From Anaeramoeba ignava BMAN (Eukaryota > Protista > Anaeramoebae), in NCBI GenBank assembly GCA_028826165.1, contig JAPDFW010000074.1, positions 124,001-188,000 on the forward strand: DNA of 64,000 bases. The letters are read 5' to 3'. This document shows, in pieces, positions 22,972 through 34,700 of the stretch. A program made the position numbers and the translations under genes. Numbering within the stretch: the first letter of the stretch is position 1; each line of letters starts with the position of its first letter. Under the pieces are notes generated by a model. That model searched no databases and had not been told where the DNA came from. It worked only from the letters and a program-made list of their open reading frames with translations.

Positions 22972-24198
22972 TTAAAGAAAAACATTCACAACTTTTTGAA
23001 TTTTTGCTCGACAAATTGGACAATTAGTCAAAGATTTAGCGCATTCTTCACAAACAGAAAGATGTGCACAAGGGATAAACATGCATTTTCTGAGATTCTC
23101 CATGCACACAACACAATGTGTGATTGATTCAAGCTCTTCAATTTTTTTTGAAGTAACCATTTCTTTTTGAGCATTTTGGATTTTCTTTTTGGGGGCAATA
23201 GCAAAAGAAGAAAAAGCAAAAATTTCATGTTCCACATTTTTCGTTTTTTTTTCCTCATTTGGATCTGCATTTCCAACGCAAAAGAAACAATCACGCGGGT
23301 CTTCTTCAAACGGATTTTGATGGAATAAATAAACAAAACCACCATTTTCGCAGATTTTCCACTCTTTTTTTGATTCAGAAACAAGAGTTTCATTTGGACG
23401 AACCCAGCAATAATAACGCGCGCCTTTGTCGTACATACTTTGTATTGTGATGTCCTGGAATCTGCCTTCGCGATAAAGACAACTAGTGAATTCATGATCC
23501 CATTTATGCGGTCCGTTAAAAAAAAGTCCTCTTCCAATTCCAATTGCATTTGCTCCAACAACGCGATCTGAACTGTCAAAATAAAGATATCCCCCAAAAC
23601 TCACAAAAACTACTTCTGGCGCTGTTAGATCAAGTTGCGCTTTTTGATCTTCCGTTAACTGACTAACCCCCGCTAATGGATATGCCCAAACAAAAGATGT
23701 CGCTTTAATTGGAATTTTCGCTATTATTTTTGATTTTTCATCAAGTGTGATCGGATGTTTTGGTGAAAATGTCCCGAAATTCCAAACGTTAAATTTGTGA
23801 AGAAGTCCTAGTTTTCCTAAAAAGGAAATTGAATAGATAAATGATTCCATTGATTCAATTTTCGGTCTTAAATTTGTTGGAATTATTCCAAATGGTCCAA
23901 GTGCATTTGGAAAGGTTTCTGTATCATCATCTTCATCATCTTCAACTTCATCTTCACTAATTACAACTATATCCATTTTTTTCTTCTCTTCAAAATGTAC
24001 TTTTTTTTCTTTTTCTTTCTCTTTTTCTTTCTCTGAAAATTTCTCTTCTAATTCTTCTTTTTCTTTTTCTGTTTCCAAAAGTGTTTGTGTTAATTCTTTG
24101 TTTTTTTCTTCTAATTCCGCTATTCTTGTTCGCAATTCTTTCATTTGTTTTTCTACTTCTTCTGGTTGTAAAGGAATAAAATAATTTTCTTGATCCAT
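22972..24198 (-). CDS. RING-finger (IAP/MGRN-type C3HC4) E3 ligase with N-terminal coiled coil and unrecognised central domain
   Basis: C-terminal CVVCMENLRKCMFIPCAHLSVCEECAKSLTNCPICRAKI. First ATG at 24198; intronless. Confidence 0.88.
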   Translation of the reverse strand: MDQENYFIPLQPEEVEKQMKELRTRIAELEEKNKELTQTLLETEKEKEELEEKFSEKEKEKEKEKKVHFEEKKKMDIVVISEDEVEDDEDDDTETFPNALGPFGIIPTNLRPKIESMESFIYSISFLGKLGLLHKFNVWNFGTFSPKHPITLDEKSKIIAKIPIKATSFVWAYPLAGVSQLTEDQKAQLDLTAPEVVFVSFGGYLYFDSSDRVVGANAIGIGRGLFFNGPHKWDHEFTSCLYREGRFQDITIQSMYDKGARYYCWVRPNETLVSESKKEWKICENGGFVYLFHQNPFEEDPRDCFFCVGNADPNEEKKTKNVEHEIFAFSSFAIAPKKKIQNAQKEMVTSKKIEELESITHCVVCMENLRKCMFIPCAHLSVCEECAKSLTNCPICRAKIQKVVNVFL

Positions 24199-24339
24199 TT
24201 TAATTAAAAACAAAAACAAAAAAAACCAAAATAAAAATGAAAAATGAAAAATTTTAATTAAAAAACAGAAAATTTTTTCTTTTTAGTTTTTTTTTTCCTT
24301 TTTTAAAAGTTCACTTTTTTAATTCATCATTCTCAAAAA

Positions 24340-26030
24340 ATTAATAATTAAAAAATAAACTTTTCTAATTAATAATTTTTAAATTTTAATAAAATATTTA
24401 TTATTTACAAATTATTTAGAATAAATTTATAAATAAATTATTTTTGATTTTAATTATTAATTTTGAAATAATTTAAATAAAATAATTTAATAATTAAAAT
24501 ATACTTTTCTAATTAATAATTTTTAAGTTTTAATAAAATATTTATTATTTACAAATTATTTAGAATAAGTTTATAAATAAATTATTTTTGATTTTAATTA
24601 TCAATTTTGAAATAATTTAAATAAAATAATTTAATAAATAAAATATACTTTTCTATTTAATAATTTTTAAGTTTTAATAAAATATTTATTATTTACAAAT
24701 TATTTAGAATAAATTTATAAATAAATTATTTTTAAATTTAGTTATCAATTTTGAAATAATTTGAATAAAATAATTTAATAATCAAAATAAACTTTTCTAA
24801 TTAACAATTTTTAAGTTTCAATAAAATATTTATTATTTACAAATTATTTAGAATAAATTTATAAATAAATTATTTTTGATTTTAATTATCAATTTTGAAA
24901 TAATTTGAATAAAATAATTTAATAATTAAAATAAACTTTTCTAATTAATAATTTTTAAGTTTTAATAAAATATTTATTATTTATAAATTATTTAGAATAA
25001 ATTTATAAATAAATCATTTTTAAATTTAATTATCAATTTTGAAATAATTTGAATAAAATAATTTAATAAATAAATAAACTTTTCTAATTAATAATTTTTA
25101 AGTTTTTAATAAAATATTTATTATTTACAAATTATTTAGAATAAATTTATAAATAAATTATTTTTAAATTTAATTATCAATTTTGAAATAATTTAAATAA
25201 AATAATTTAATAAAAATAAACTTTTCTAATTAATAATTTTTAAGTTTTAATAAAATATTTATTATTTACAAATTATTTATAATAAATTTATAAATAAATT
25301 ATTTTTGATTTTAATTATTAATTTTGAAATAATTTAAATAAAAATAATTTAATAAATAAATAAACTTTCTAATTAATAATTTTTAAGTTTTAATAAAATA
25401 TTTTTATTTAAAAATTATTTAGAATAAATTTATAAATAAATTATTTTTAATTTTAATTATCAATTTTGAAATAATTTGAATAAAATAATTTAATAAATAA
25501 AATAAACTTTTCTAATTAATAATTTTTAAGTTTTAATAAAATATTTATTAATTAAAAATTAATTAGAATAAATTTATAAATAAATTATTTTTGAATTTAA
25601 TTAATTTTTGAAATAATTTGAATAAAATAATTTAATAAATAAAATATAATTTTCTATTTAATAATTTTTAAGTTTTAATAAAATATTTATTATTTACAAA
25701 TTATTTAGAATAAATTTATAAATAAATTATTTTTAAATTTAATTATCAATTTTGAAATAATTTGAATAAAATAATTTAATAAAAATAAACTTTTTCTAAT
25801 TAATAATTTTTAAATTTTAATAAAATAATTATTTTACAAATTATTTAGAATAAATTTATAAAATAAATTATTTTTTTTTAATTTCAATTTTGAAATAATT
25901 TGAATAAAATAATTTAATAATTAAAATAAACTTTTCTAATTAATAATTTTTAAGTTTTAATAAAATATTTATTATTTAAAAATTATTTAGAATAAATTTA
26001 TAAATAAATTATTTTTGATTTAAATTAAAA
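24340..26030. repeat. 144-bp satellite, ~12 tandem copies
   Basis: The anchor CTTTTCTA recurs at 24360, 24504, 24648, 24792, 24936, 25079, 25221, 25365 (one T short), 25507, ~25650, 25790 and 25931, a period of 141-144. Confidence 0.95.
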
Positions 26031-26513: not shown

Positions 26514-28173
26514 ATGGATAATAATAACAATAATAATAATAACCAAATTGAAAATCAAAATCAAAATCAAAATCAAAATTGAAAATCAAAATGAAAATCA
26601 AAATGAAAATGAAAATGAAATGAAAAATTTAGAAAAAAAAGTAACAAAAAATTTAATTAAAGATTATTCAAACCTTTTAAATGGAAATTCATTTAAAGAT
26701 TTTTCAATTTTTGTTGAGAATAAATCAAATCCTTTTGAATTTAAAGTTCATAAATCAATTTTATCTTCAAGATCTCCTTTTTTTAATGAATCATTAAGGC
26801 AAGAATCTCTTTCTATTTCTTTAAATCAATTTAATAAAAAAGAAATGGAATCAATTTTGAGTTATATTTATTATGGAAATATTTCTTTTGAGAATCAAGA
26901 AAATCTTATTCAATTATTAGAAATTTCAATTTATTTTAAATTAAATTTATTGAAAGAAATTATTCAAAAAAAAATTTTAAATTCAATTAATTATTCAAAT
27001 TTTTTCCAATTTTTATTCCAAAATCGAAATTTAAATTCAAATGAAATTGAAATAAAATGTTTTGAATTAATAAATAAAAATTTTTCCCAAATTCAAAATA
27101 ATGAAAATTTATTCAATTTAACTAAAGAAGAAATTATCAAATTTATTCAATTTAAACAAGAAAAAAAAGAAATTTTTCAATTTGATTTTTTTCAATTTTT
27201 AAATAATTGGATTGAAAAAAGAAATAAAAAATTAAAAGGAAAAAAAGAAAAAGAAAAAGAAAAAGAAAAAGGAATTGAAAAGAAAAGATTATTTCATTCT
27301 TTTTTTTCATTATTTGATAAAGATTCAATTTCAAAACAAGATTTTGATAAATTAAATCAATTTGATATTTTTCCTAAATCTTTTTTAGTTGATATTCAAA
27401 ACAAAGTTATTCAAGACAAAGATAAACAAAATCAAGAAATGAAAATTGAAATTGAAGATAAATTAAAAAAAGAACTTGATAAGAAAGATAAAGAAATTGA
27501 AGAAAAATGGAAGAAAGAAGTTGATAAAATGAAAGAAGAAAATGATAAAATGAAAGAAGAAGTTGATAAAATGAAACCTATTTTTGAACAACATCAAAAA
27601 GAAATTGAATTACAAAAAAGTTTTTTTGGATTATCAGATTCTGAAATTATTAAAGATATTGAATATGTTAAGAAATTAAAAGAATGGATAAATGATAATG
27701 ATTTTTTTTCTAAAATGAAAAAAGGATTTTCAGCAAAAAGAGATGGATTTTCATCTTCTAATTTTCATTCTAAAGCTGATAATCATGGAAAAACATTAGT
27801 TATTATCAAAACATCATCAAATTATATTTTTGGTGGATTTACTCAAGTTGGTTATAAATCAAATGTTAACAATTATATTAATGATTCAAATGCATTTATT
27901 TTCACATTAAAAAATCCATCAAATCATCAACCTCAAAAATTTACTTGTAAACTTCCTCAATATGCAATTTATTCTAATTCAAGTTATGGTCCAACTTTTG
28001 GAGGTCATGATATTTATATTAATCCAAATCTTAATCAAGGATCTCATACTAATTTTGGACATTCTTATAATACACCAAATGGAATTACTCCTCAATCAAC
28101 TCAAGCTCAAAATTATTTTACAGGAAATTATAATCAATGGCAAATTTCAGAACTTGAATGTTATTTCATTTAA
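26514..28173 (+). CDS. BTB/POZ - BACK-like - coiled coil - TLDc protein, copy 1
   Basis: BTB motifs KDFSIFV and FKVHKSILSSRSPFF; TLDc motifs SAKRDGFSSSNFHSKADNHGKTLVIIKT, YIFGGFT, GPTFGG and ISELECY. The ATG at 26514 matches copy 2; one extra A near 26576 shifts the first ~21 codons out of frame. Confidence 0.9.
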
Positions 28174-28499
28174 TTCCTCTTTTTTTTTTCAATTTTAATT
28201 TTAATTTTAATTTTAATTTTTAATTTTAATTCAAATTCAAATTTTAATTCCAATTCCAATTCAAATTCCAAATCAAATTCAAATTCCAATTCAATTTTAA
28301 TTTCAATAAAAAAACAAAACAATATTTTTATCTAATTTTTAATAATAAAATAAATAATAAATAATTAATTTAGATAAAAGAAATTATTATAAAATATAAA
28401 AATAGAAATAATTTTAAATTTAATTATTTATTATTCTTTATTTCATTTTATTAATAATTTTAATTCATTTTTTTCCTTTTTTTTATTTTCAAATTAATT

Positions 28500-29460
28500 A
28501 ATTTTAATAAATAATTAATCATTAATTTATATAGAATAAATTTTAAATAAATTATTTTTTCAATTTTTTATTTGAGATAAAATAATTTTAAAAATAAACT
28601 TTTCTAATTTATTTTTAAGTTTTAATTATTTACAAATTTTTGAAATAATTTTAAATAAAAAATAATTTTAATAATTTAAATAAAATAATAATAAAAATAA
28701 ACTTTTCTATTTAATAATTTTTAAGTTTTAATAAAATATTTATTATTTACAAATTATTTAGAATAAATATAAATAAATTATTTTTAAAAATTATCAATTT
28801 TGAAATAATTTGAATAAATTTAAATAATGAAAATAAACTTTTCTAATTTAATTTTTAAGTTTTAATAAAATATTTTCTATTTACAAATTATTTAGAATAA
28901 ATTTATAAATAAATTATTTTTGATTTTAATTATAATTTTGAAAATAATTTGAATAAAATAATTTAATAAATTAAAATAAACTTTTCTATTTAATAATTTT
29001 TAAGTTTTAATAAAATATTTATTTATTTAAATAAATTTATTTAGAATTTAAATAATTTTAAAATAAAATAATCAAAATTATTTTTCTATTTAATAATTTT
29101 TAAGTTTTAATAAAAATTTTTTTGAAAATTATTTAGAATAAAATAAATAAATTATTTTTAAATTTAGTTATCAATTTTGAATAAAATAATGAATAAAATA
29201 ATTTAATAATCAAAATAAACTTTTCTAATTAACAATTTTTAAGTTTTAATAAAATATTTATTATTTACAAATTATTTAGAATAAATTTATAAATAAATTT
29301 TTTTTTAATTATCAATTTTGAAATAATTTAAATAAAATAATTTAATAATTAAAATAAACTTTTCTAATTAATAATTTTTAAGTTTTAATAAAATATTTAT
29401 TATTTAAAAATTATTTAGAATAAATTTATAAATAAATTATTTTTGATTTTAATTAAAATA
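28500..29460. repeat. Second, more degenerate array of the same 144-bp satellite (~6-7 copies)
   Basis: Same unit (AAACTTTTCTAATTAATAATTTTTAAGTTTTAATAAAATATTTATTATTTACAAATTATTTAGAATAAA...) lies upstream of copy 2. Confidence 0.9.
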
Positions 29461-29769
29461 ATTGATAATTAAATAAATAAATAAAATATATTTAAATTCC
29501 ACTTTTTATTTATTTTTGCCTTCTTTTTAATTTTTAATTTTTCATTTTTCTTTACAAAAACAAAAACAAAAACAAAAACAAAAACAAAGAAATAAAAAGA
29601 ATTTACTTTTTATTTTTATTAATTTTTTATTATTCAAAAACACAAAAACTTTTACACAAAAAGTAATTAAAATTTATTTATTTTTTATTTTTTATTTTTT
29701 AAATTCCATTTTTATTTATTTAATTAATTAATTTAATTCCAATAAAATAAAATAAAATAAAATAGGAAA

Positions 29770-31526
29770 ATGGATAACAATAACCAAATTGAAAATCAAA
29801 TTGAAAATCAAAATCAAAATCAAAATCAAATTGAAAATCAAAATCAAAATCAAATTGAAAATCAAAATCAAAATGAAAATGAAAATGAAATGAAAAATTT
29901 AGAAAAAAAAGTAACAAAAAATTTAATTAAAGATTATTCAAACCTTTTAAATGGAAATTCATTTAAAGATTTTTCAATTTTTGTTGAGAATAAATCAAAT
30001 CCTTTTGAATTTAAAGTTCATAAATCAATTTTATCTTCAAGATCTCCTTTTTTTAATGAATCATTAAGACAAGAATCTCTTTCTATTTCTTTAAATCAAT
30101 TTAATAAAAAAGAAATGGAATCAATTTTGATTTATATTTATTATGGAAATATTTCTTTTGATAATCAAGAAAATCTTATTCAATTATTGGAAATTTCAAT
30201 TTATTTTAAATTAAATTTATTGAAAGAAATTATTCAAAAATTTTAAATTCAATTAATTATTCAAATTTTTCCAATTTTTATTCCAAAATCGAAATTTAAA
30301 TTCAAATGAAATTGAAATAAAATGTTTTGAATTAATAAATAAAAATTTTTCCCAAATTCAAAATAATGAAAATTTATTCAATTTAACTAAAGAAGAAATT
30401 ATCAAATTTATTCAATTTAAACAAGAAAAAAAAGAAATTTTTCAATTTGATTTTTTTCAATTTTTAAATAATTGGATTGAAAAAAGAAATAAAAAATTAA
30501 AAGGAAAAAGAAAAAGAAAAAGAAAAAGAAAAAGGAATTGAAAAGAAAAGATTATTTCATTCTTTTTTTTCATTATTTGATAAAGATTCAATTTCAAAAC
30601 AAGATTTTGATAAATTAAATCAATTTAATTTTTTTCCTAAATCTTTTTTAGTTGATATTCAAAACAAAGTTATTCAAGATAAAGATAAACAAAATCAAGA
30701 AATGAAAATTGAAATTGAAGATAAATTAAAAAAAGAACTTGATAAGAAAGATAAAGAAATTGAAGATAAAAACAAAGAAATTGAAGATAAAAACAAAGAA
30801 ATTGAAGATAAAAATAAAGAAAGTTGAAGAAAAAACAAAGAAATTGAAGAAAAATGGAAGAAAAAAGTTGATAAAATGAAAAAAAAGAAAGTTGATAAAA
30901 TGAAACCTATTTTTTTGAAACATGGAAAAAGAATCGAAAAGAAATTGAAATAAGAACCAATCAAAAAGAATTTTCCTCAATTTTCAGATTCTGAAATTAT
31001 TAAAGATATTGAATATGTTAAGAAATTAAAAGAATGGATAAATGATAATGATTTTTTTTCTAAAATGAAAAAAGGATTTTCAGCAAAAAGAGATGGATTT
31101 TCATCTTCTAATTTTCATTCTAAAGCTGATAATCATGGAAAAACATTAGTTATTATCAAAACATCATCAAATTATATTTTTGGTGGATTTACTCAAGTTG
31201 GTTATAAATCAAATGTTAACAATTTTATTAATGATTCAAATGCATTTATTTTCACATTAAAAAATCCATCAAATCATCAACCTCAAAAATTTACTTGTAA
31301 ACTACCTCAATATGCAATTTATTCTTATTCAACTCATGGTCCAAGTTTTGGAGGAGGTTATGATATTTATATTAATCAAAATTTTAATCAAGGATCTTAT
31401 ATTAATTTTGGACATTCTTATAATACACCAAATGGAATTAATTATCAAACAAATGAAGCTAAAAATTATTTTGCTGGAAATTATAATCAATGACAAATTT
31501 CAGAACTTGAATGTTATTTCATTTAA
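29770..31526 (+). pseudogene. BTB-coiled coil-TLDc copy 2, disrupted
   Basis: Colinear with copy 1. Indels occur in A/T runs (~30240, ~30270, ~30510, ~30820-30950), and a TGG>TGA nonsense change at 31491-31493 removes the last 10 codons. The indels may be assembly errors. Confidence 0.7.
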
Positions 31527-31788: not shown

Positions 31789-34700
31789 TCATTTCCACAT
31801 TTTCATGATAGACATTGAACCATCAAGATCCTTTTTCATAACTTTTGAAACAGCCATTTCGAAGTCTTCTTGAGTTAAATGAATTCTTCTTTCACGAAGA
31901 GCATACATTCCAGCTTCAGTACAAACAGCTTTAATTTCTGCACCAGAAGCTCCAGCCATTTTATCTGAAATTTTCTTAAGATTTATTCCTCTAACTAAAT
32001 TCATTTTTCTTGAGTGAATTCTAAGAATTTCAAGCCGAGCCTAAATTATATTTCATTTTAAATTTTAATTTTAATTTTAATTTTAATTTTAATTTTAATT
32101 TTAATTTTAATTTTAATTTTAATTTTAATTTTAATTTTAATTTTAATTTTAATTTTAATTTTAATTTTAATTTTAATTTTAATTTTAATTTTAATTTTAA
32201 TTTTAATTTTAATTTTAATTTAATTTTAATTTTAATTTTAATTTTAATTTTTAATTTTAATTTTAATTTTAAATTTTTAATTTTAATTTTAATTTTAATT
32301 TTAATTTTAATTTTAATTTTTAATTTTAATTTAAATTTTAATTTTAATTTTAATTTTTAAATTTAATTTTAATTTAAATTTTAATTTTAATTTTAATTTT
32401 AATTTTAATTTTAATTTTAATTTTAATTTTAATTTTAATTTTAATTTTAATTTTAATTTTAATTTTAATTTTAATTTTAATTTTAATTTTAATTTTAATT
32501 TTAATTTTAATTTTAATTTTTAATTTTAATTTTAATTTTAATTTTAATTTTAATTTTAATTATAATTTTAATTTTTTTTAAATTTTAATTTTAATTTTAA
32601 TTTTAATTTTAATTTAATTATAATTTTAATTATAATTTTAATTTTAATTTTAATTTTAATTTTAATTTTAATTTTAATTTTAATTTTAATTTTAATTTTA
32701 ATTTTAATTTTAATTTTAATTTTAATTTTAATTTTAATTTTAATTTTAATTTTAATTTTAATTTTAATTTAATTTTAATTTTGATTTTAATTTTTGATTT
32801 AATTTTAATTTTAATTTTAATTTTTAATTTTAATTTTAATTTTAATTTTAATTCAAATCCAAATTCAAATTCAAATTCCAATTCAATTTCAAAATCAATT
32901 TTAAATTTAATTCAAATTCAAATTCAAATTCAAATTCAAAATTTATGTTTAAAAGTAATTTTAAATTTTAAAAGAAAAAAGCTACAGATTCATTAGGATT
33001 TGGGAATTCAATTTTTCTATCAATTCTACCAGGACGTAAAAGAGCGGGATCAAGAATATCAATTCTATTAGTAGCCATTAAAACCTTAATATTTTGAGAA
33101 GATTCGAAGCCATCAAGTTGATTAAGAAGCTCCAACATAGTTCTTTGGACTTCAGAATCACCGCCTCTAGAAGACTCTACTCTCGTGCTACCAATAGAAT
33201 CGATTTCATCCATAAAAATAATAGAAGGCGCATGGAGCCTAGCCATGACAAAGAGCTCCCTGACCATTCTGCTGCCTTCTCCAATGTATTTTTGAACCAG
33301 TTCTGCGCCACTAACTCTTATAAAAGTGCAGTCAGTATGATGAGCAACAGCTCTTGCCAAAAGCGTTTTTCCTGTCCCAGGTGGCCCGAATAGTAGCACG
33401 CCTTTCGGTTGGGATATCCCGAGACTGTCGAATAATTCTGGGTGTTTAATTGGTAGTTCAATCACTTCTTTGATCTCTTGAATTTGTCGATCTAATCCCC
33501 CAATCATGTCGTATGTTGAATCCGGCACTTTTTCTACTCGCATTAAACTTACTAGTGGATCTACTTTGTTCGGTAGGATCTTGTGAAGTCGATATCCGTT
33601 CCCGCTTAATGCTACTCGTGTCCCAGGTGTTAGTGTTGCAATGTCTATGTTTTTGCTGATTCCAACAACATATTTACCTTCAGGATGGATCTTTTTTTTT
33701 AGATTATTGTTTTTATATTAAATATTAATAAATTTGATTATAAAATTGTTTATAAAATTGTTTATTTTTATATATAAAATTGTTTATAAATTTGATTATA
33801 AAATTGTTTATAAAATTGTTTATAAAATTGTTTTTAAATTTGTTTATAAATTTGTTTTTAAAATTGTTTATAAATTTTATATAAATTTTAAATAAATTTG
33901 TTTATAAATTTGTTTATAAATTTGTTTATAAAATTATTTATAAAATTATTTATAAAATTATTTATAAAATTATTAATAAAATTATTTATAAAATTATATA
34001 TAAAATTATATATAAAATTGTTTATAAATTTGTTTTATAAATTTGTTTATAAATTTGTTTATAAAATTGTTTATAAATTTGTTTTATAAATTTGTTTTTA
34101 AATTTGTTTTTAAATTTGTTTTTAAATTGTTTATAAAATTATTTATAAAATTTGTTTATAAATTTGTTTATAAAATTGTTTATAAAATTGTTTTTAAAAT
34201 TGTTTATAAATTTGTTTTATAAAATTGTTTATAAATTTAAAATTATTTATAAATTTGTTTATAAAATTATTTATAAAATTATATATAAATTTGTTTATAA
34301 AATTGTTTATAAAATTGTTTATAAATTGTATATAAATTTTAAATAAATTTGTTTTTAAAATTATTTATAAAATTAATTATAAAATTTTATATATAAAATT
34401 ATTTATAAAATTATATATAAAATTATTTATAAAATTATTTATAAAATTATTTATAAATTTGTTTATAAAATTAATAAAATTATTAATAAATTTATTTATA
34501 AAAAAATTATAAAATTGTAAATATAAAATTATTAATAAAATTATTAATAAATTTGTTTTTAAATTTGTTTATAAAATTATTTATAAAATTATTTATAAAA
34601 TTATTTGTAAAATTATTTATAAAATTTATAAATTATTTATAAAATTATTGTTTTTATAAATTTGTTTATAAAATTATATATAAAATTGTTTATAAAATTA

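Follow-up and report, generated by a model that had tools for sequence, protein, structure and literature searches.

TLDc domains are conserved vacuolar-type ATPase (V-ATPase) and oxidative-stress modules. This study concerns two neighbouring BTB-TLDc genes, the twins (copy 1 and copy 2), in a stretch of 64,000 nucleotides from Anaeramoeba ignava BMAN (contig JAPDFW010000074.1, positions 124,001 to 188,000; GC content ~17%). The whole stretch is called the window and positions are given within it; TLDc residues are numbered from residue 1 at 27634 of copy 1, residue n starting at 27634+3(n-1). We show that a defined set of TLDc codons in this gene family is under strong diversifying selection and that variants are shuffled among the paralogues in pieces of tens of bases. 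With a probability of about 0.6, the twins arose by a recent tandem duplication inside a large germline repertoire of BTB-TLDc proteins, which would act as adaptors of the Cullin-3 type and recognise their targets by a diversifying TLDc face.

Relation to described TLDc and BTB proteins

The proteins OXR1, NCOA7, TBC1D24, mEAK-7 and Rtc5 (PMC8608904; PMC9263379) share with the A. ignava family the TLDc fold, the core residues G38, G67, G123 and E173/E175, and the use of TLDc as a protein-binding module. Unlike this family, they are low-copy and conserved, carry no BTB domain and have one conserved partner, the V-ATPase. The model of the copy 1 TLDc domain (predicted local distance difference test, pLDDT, 96) matched 7obp with a template modelling (TM) score of 0.78, and Z-scores of the TLDc fold matches were 19-21. 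NCOA7, OXR2 and mEAK-7 were matched with Z ~20 and TM 0.74-0.78 at an identity of 14-18%, which argues against orthology to OXR1, NCOA7 or mEAK-7.

The closer structural neighbours were BTB-, B-box-, Ig-, EGF- and fn3-TLDc proteins and two Pandoravirus proteins. Such proteins of cnidarians, rotifers, diatoms and Pandoravirus share with the A. ignava family the YGPTFG motif, a terminal TLDc domain and a TM score of 0.87-0.92, and 7,310 representatives of the same TLDc subfamily were counted at E<=1e-10. In A. ignava, sites such as Y118 are hypervariable, whereas these relatives conserve them fairly well; sites 118, 121, 128 and 81 are more variable within A. ignava than among distant metagenomic relatives. 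A literature search found no paper on the function, expansion or selection of the BTB-, B-box- or Ig-TLDc relatives. Pandoravirus TLD and B-box-TLDc proteins were also close structural matches in BFVD, and a JGI metagenome contig from an unrelated organism (L183) carries two TLDc genes, one of which adjoins a RING-UBOX frame.

In its order of parts (BTB, 3-box/BACK-like helices and a C-terminal recognition domain), the family resembles KBTBD4, KEAP1, KLHL11 and SPOP. Those proteins differ in that they carry Kelch or MATH domains, are encoded by conserved genes and have fixed substrates. The BTB region of the family aligns with all four through the post-BTB helices (E 5e-6 to 4e-3), and the KBTBD4 alignment spans 146 amino acids and reaches past the BTB. 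Pfam scores were 82.9 bits for TLD (PF07534; cut-off 24.5) and 51 bits for PF00651; PF07707 (BACK) matched only the divergent paralogues. By homology, the BTB domain and the following helices would recruit Cullin-3; the genome contains ~8-9 cullin loci.

The nematode F-box and MATH-BTB adaptors (primary paper Thomas 2006), which form large birth-death families, are also similar in sequence evolution: a large family, a ratio of nonsynonymous to synonymous rates (omega) >1 in the substrate domain and a conserved cullin-binding domain. Selection in nematodes is reported to act in the substrate-binding and not in the cullin-binding domain, and detection of foreign proteins was proposed (PMC4334554, citing its ref. 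41). A. ignava departs from the nematode case in several respects. Its variable module is TLDc, and the host lives free as an anaerobic protist. BTB identity between dispersed loci reaches 99%, the shuffling of variants works over tens of bases, and some members have arrays of cloned introns at one loop.

Diversifying selection on TLDc codons and the putative binding face

In the A. ignava assembly (42.8 Mb), at least 150 TLDc copies were scored among 556-670 candidates, and the BTB-TLDc family probably numbers several hundred. The 177 distinct TLDc coding sequences collected are the best-scoring part of the family. The genome is 80.65% AT, and the main text of the genome paper makes no mention of TLD, POZ or a BTB-TLDc family (PMC11550330); no paper linking Anaeramoeba with TLDc, or describing an expanded or selected BTB-TLDc family, was found in the literature. 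Homologues of the twins bear the A. ignava locus prefix M0811. In ~75 annotated paralogues, the BTB region shares 90-99% identity with that of copy 1 but the TLDc domain only 48-65%, in agreement with the constant BTB scaffold and variable TLDc suggested by the initial annotation of the window. TLDc also ends 15 of the 16 further BTB carriers checked, most of which are interrupted at the 123-125 loop.

The twins and their closest TLDc relative, L003, form a side lineage with ~78% identity to the main consensus, and 90 main-clade genes could therefore serve as an independent test set from which the twins were excluded. At 11 TLDc sites (81, 113, 115, 118, 121, the 123-125 loop, 128, 130, 138 and 143), 11-16 amino acids each were found among these genes, and the alleles often differ by multi-base changes. 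All 90 genes are distinct at the 11 sites (8.8 differences on average), and tyrosine accounts for 30% of the residues there. Silent positions are almost fixed, those of GC-ending codons included (AAG13 in 83/90, ATC58 in 89/90 and TTC178 in 83/90 genes), and many pairs of ~94% identity differ by 17-24 replacements versus 0-3 silent changes. In custom MG94 site models on FastTree trees, allowing omega >1 gave twice the log-likelihood difference (2dlnL) of 994-1156, whether the frequencies were F3x4 or 92% AT and whether or not ambiguous loops were masked; omega was ~5-30 at the selected sites. With a site-varying silent rate, 2dlnL was still 113-158. Positive selection on TLDc, proposed earlier from the twins together with a site-wise dN/dS analysis, is thus borne out at specific codons, where omega >1 was retained with AT bias allowed for.

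A tree-free neutral simulation was added because recombination inflates tree-based tests. With an independent genealogy for each codon and calibration on silent diversity, it gave means of 2.6-3.7 amino acids per codon and a maximum of 9, compared with the 11-16 observed.

Five of the variable residues (81, 113, 121, 128 and 138) lie one per short strand beside the conserved, mostly hydrophobic partners I82, I112, F122, F/I127 and S/T139. G38 and G67 are invariant (177/177 each) and G123 nearly so (174/176); mapped through 4acj, they equate to NCOA7 G815 (surface), G845 and G896 (buried). G815 is required for V-ATPase binding by NCOA7 (PMC8608904), and G276 is the counterpart of G38 in mEAK-7 (PMC9263379). 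The residues of mEAK-7 that contact the V-ATPase (PMC9263379) correspond to G38/F39, which are invariant here, and, in the case of P316/Q317, to the variable loop at 79-81; its contacts Y341, T354, Y367 and K384 fall at residues ~104-150 by an offset estimate only, as the HMMER alignments end at 329. The variable part appears to overlap the surface by which known TLDc domains bind proteins.

The invariance of G38 and the alignment of P316/Q317 to a variable loop would also suit V-ATPase regulators like OXR1, NCOA7 and mEAK-7, diversified for compartment specificity or for evasion of effectors. We consider this scarcely probable, since the identity to the known members is low and hundreds of diverging faces are hard to account for when the partner is a conserved pump. 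Distant members of the subfamily conserve G38 too, and it may be structural. Moreover, two divergent TLDc genes that do not belong to the expanded family, L163 (C13:747016) and L164 (C78:281529), have the highest Pfam TLD scores and are candidates for the ordinary TLDc function.

Several points weigh against a repertoire of adaptors under selection. All sequences come from one assembly, and the 11 sites were chosen from the same 90 genes. The two-allele sites 62, 168, 174 and 176 may be false positives of recombination inflating tree-based omega. Nine of the 17 twin replacements described below fall at the 32 sites called selected in the main clade (P=7e-4), an enrichment which is marginal inside codons 113-170 alone (P=0.056). 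That the variable residues and adjoining loops probably form one exposed Tyr/Asn-rich binding face is read from the sequence pattern and DSSP. An RNA run was sought for A. ignava and none was found, and the ubiquitin-ligase role is predicted from sequence. Next to the variable codons, silent diversity is raised by a factor of 2.5-3, as linked selection predicts, and this increase is too small to explain them. Finally, region-averaged piN/piS is 2.2-2.9 in simple models and ~1 under the strongest AT-bias model (AT92), because of which the claim of selection was limited to specific sites.

The last two points, and a GC content of only 8.6% at third codon positions (GC3) of the TLDc family, are also what speaks for an absence of selection, in which conversion would homogenise the framework, the loops would drift neutrally and AT bias would mask silent change. 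Such an origin is very unlikely. Even at a threefold rate, the simulation gave means of 4.5-6.5 amino acids (95th percentile <=9, maximum 12) versus 11-16 at all 11 sites, and about a tenfold rate would be needed for the observed numbers. The variable codons alternate with near-invariant codons 3 nt away, and the changes lead to GC-rich codons (TGG, CGT, GGT), opposite to the mutation bias. Neutral drift with AT bias is largely refuted.

Multidomain members and a pair of identical sequences were also noted. The locus L046 (G000:C104:866600-868990) encodes four tandem TLDc domains in one frame of 870 amino acids, three of them 97-99% identical, and the protein P0237 has six TLDc domains. L168 (C65:57913) and L169 (C74:377367) share an identical TLDc coding sequence, which indicates a very recent duplication or assembly redundancy.

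Exchange among paralogues and the twin loci

At common two-allele sites, r2 decayed from 0.18 within 15 nt to a background of 0.012 beyond 45 nt (permutation P=0.001), and all four allele combinations were present in 74% of the site pairs. Common variants separated by no more than 5-40 nt were thus in linkage equilibrium across dispersed loci. The silent sites 84 and 97 showed r2=0, and no linkage was seen among sites 168, 174 and 176, which are separated by just 6-24 nt. Recurrent mutation is an unlikely source because variants are few, if any, at other silent sites. The simplest cause is gene conversion among dispersed paralogues in short or patchy tracts. Like gene-conversion mosaic repertoires, the family shows linkage that decays with distance, and pairs of sites with all four gametes among its paralogues. 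The initial annotation had offered selection or conversion from a paralogue pool as alternatives; each of them operates at the family level, but they act together.

In L181 (G000:C93:984400-986950), an array of cloned introns (~180 nt) with 3-base pieces between them lies directly after GPxFG, and L182 (G000:C137:804300-806800) has a similar triplet pattern after GPxFG, the triplets being putative exons. The first intron of L181 is in phase 1, and inclusion of the first 3-base piece gives TAG, so that skipping, another acceptor or a pseudogene is needed. Both arrays sit at the loop where the twins differ by one glycine.

The twin TLDc domains were compared by codon alignment (27634-28173 versus 30984-31526). 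The 16 amino-acid changes recorded earlier by eye were reproduced exactly, between 27976 and 28122, as were the Gly indel (a GGA insertion in copy 2 at 31350) and the TGG>TGA change (28138/31491), all of them within ~56 codons (115-169). No whole codon in the patch differs only silently, as had been stated, but the T/A codon (ACA/GCT) conceals one silent step, and the count becomes 17 nonsynonymous to 1 synonymous. The near-constancy described upstream was also found: codons 1-112 differ by one Y/F change at 27874, which is the hypervariable codon 81 upstream of the patch, and one silent change (27952). The ten codons downstream of the patch are identical, and the "handful" of BTB differences amounts to 7 substitutions in the BTB and linker, 3 of them silent. 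Altogether, 19/21 substitutions in the TLDc alignment fall within 174/540 nt (Fisher P=2.4e-8).

The lack of silent changes in the patch had been taken as a sign of selection, for which it is weak evidence at such a GC3 (P=0.03-0.43). Compared with the patch's own synonymous sites, 17:1 gave P=0.078 (NG86), 0.029 (kappa 3) and 0.30-0.43 (AT92). Compared with gene-wide silent differences, pN/pS was 3.7-6.8 (P=3e-5 to 5e-3), for a region picked after the fact and with a silent yardstick that conversion may depress. The dN/dS of the twins alone is too weak to rely on. A similar pattern recurs independently in the five tandem TLDc genes L041-L045 (C13:576900-586400; 94-98% identical), pairs of which differ by 10-19 replacements and 0-4 silent changes.

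When the differences were polarised with L003, both twin branches were found to have changed. Codons 155-159 hold 4 nonsynonymous sites at which copy 2 has the consensus of the main clade and copy 1 agrees with L003, and this segment of copy 2 is probably a short conversion tract. The suggestion that the patch was swapped whole from a paralogue did not hold: no donor for the whole patch was found, the best other locus was 82% identical, and exact matches spanned only 20-28 nt.

A targeted mutator, either a diversity-generating retroelement or deaminase hypermutation, was also considered as the writer of the variation, in view of the C-terminal variable region, the Tyr/Asn-type codons changed at positions 1-2, and the C present in copy 1 at 12/19 twin differences. 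This origin is the least probable of those weighed here. At the variable codons T changes (0.38-0.48) as often as A (0.35-0.57), whereas the adenines in codons next to them rarely change (0.01-0.12). Polarisation shows that copy 1 gained C at several of these differences, and both branches changed. On the substitution spectrum, an adenine-specific diversity-generating retroelement is ruled out, and deaminase hypermutation was rejected as well. No template-like copy of the twin patch was found, and no reverse transcriptase was present among the nine nearby frames scanned, no genome-wide search having been made.

The initial annotation did not weigh that copy 2 is broken, being either a pseudogene or an assembly error. 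It has frameshifts in homopolymers (-4 at ~30236, -1 at ~30266, -2 at ~30505 and others in the coiled coil), and the TGA at 31491 replaces W169 and removes the last strand of the TLDc fold. There is an appreciable chance, somewhat short of even, that the frameshifts and perhaps the TGA are assembly errors, which would leave the family result unaffected.

More broadly, copy 2 could be an allelic or chimeric duplicate and the mosaic a product of mis-mapped reads. The homopolymer frameshifts, the many paralogues annotated as fragments, and the failure to find independent short-read haplotypes (Logan, transcriptomes) would agree with an assembly or polishing artefact of this kind. We regard it as very improbable. 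The array upstream of copy 2 is diverged from that of copy 1 (Table 1), which indicates a real tandem duplication, and an internal stop occurs in only 1/177 TLDc domains, namely that of copy 2. The multi-base alleles D/Q62 and S/K168 are shuffled at scales below the read length, and errors would not target 11 codons while sparing silent sites.

Table 1 Coordinates of the twin loci within the window
Feature	Position	Strand	Remarks
144-bp tandem array, 11.8 copies	24345..26027		Upstream of copy 1; belongs to the duplicated unit
Copy 1 open frame, 517 aa	26620..28173	+	BTB, 3-box/BACK-like helices, coiled coil, TLDc
Constant module, copy 1	26638..27147	+	BTB and following helices; 85-99% identity among ~115 full-length paralogues scattered over dozens of contigs
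TLDc domain, copy 1	27634..28170	+	Modelled with a TLDc fold (pLDDT 96)
Variable patch, copy 1	27970..28140	+	Holds hypervariable codons 113, 115, 118, 121, 123-125 loop, 128, 130, 138, 143
Degenerate 144-bp array	28560..29495		Upstream of copy 2; 73-96% to the array of copy 1
Copy 2	29770..31526	+	Layout as copy 1; homopolymer frameshifts and TGA; part modelled by NCBI as M0811_08614
Variable patch, copy 2	31320..31493	+	Codons 155-159 at 31449-31463

An upstream ATG of copy 1 (26514) is out of frame by one A, and the open frame begins at 26620. The upstream 144-bp array is common to the twins and L003, and the best match to the copy 1 array outside the twin locus (C2:505623-505906) lies upstream of L003. 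Arrays related to this AT-rich repeat occur at dozens of loci genome-wide (364 matches). The neighbour at 31790-33543 (-) is a gene for an AAA ATPase of the proteasome type, with a long intron of hexamer repeats, and that at 22972-24219 (-) encodes a C3HC4 RING protein; their position beside the twins is probably due to chance.

A putative recognition repertoire

The BTB end is kept near-constant across dispersed loci, and in the proposed adaptor repertoire the BTB of each paralogue, with the 3-box/BACK-like helices, would recruit Cullin-3. The TLDc face would bind a target and so deliver it for ubiquitination. As a speculation, the ligands may be rapidly changing proteins of non-self origin (prey bacteria, symbionts, their effectors or viruses). 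Changes on both branches would have shaped the patch of the twins, probably with a single short conversion tract added in copy 2. Copy 2 would afterwards have lost its function, or seems to have lost it through assembly error. In other proteins, too, TLDc stands last, after B-box, BTB, Ig, EGF or fn3 domains, which is in agreement with this arrangement.

The same adaptors under the same selection could act on endogenous targets, such as selfish elements, endogenous viral or intein products, rival paralogues or self/non-self markers, and would then reflect an internal genetic conflict. The ligand cannot be named from sequence data, which leaves room for such targets. We think them unlikely, as no co-varying partner family was identified and the nematode precedent is read as defence against foreign proteins, itself a hypothesis (PMC4334554). 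A bolder form of the non-self repertoire would be an intracellular antibody-like surveillance, in which hundreds of constant BTB adaptors ubiquitinate symbiont, prey or viral proteins, and conversion between dispersed genes at the scale of codons actively re-assorts their TLDc face (as would, in a subset, exons of one codon at the 123-125 loop). This form is offered tentatively, as a possibility that we doubt more than we favour.

The TLDc fold could thus also serve as a diversifying binding scaffold, beyond its role as a conserved V-ATPase and oxidative-stress module, and the results suggest a role for the BTB-, B-box- and Ig-TLDc proteins that other eukaryotes and giant viruses encode in their thousands and that lack annotation. 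The long-standing idea of cullin adaptors as an innate immune repertoire is now testable in a protist that houses bacterial symbionts, and at least 90 variants on one scaffold, with 11 named positions, provide natural test material. It is unusual in itself that variants separated by tens of bases reassort almost freely between dispersed loci, and this has a bearing on recombination in the A. ignava genome.

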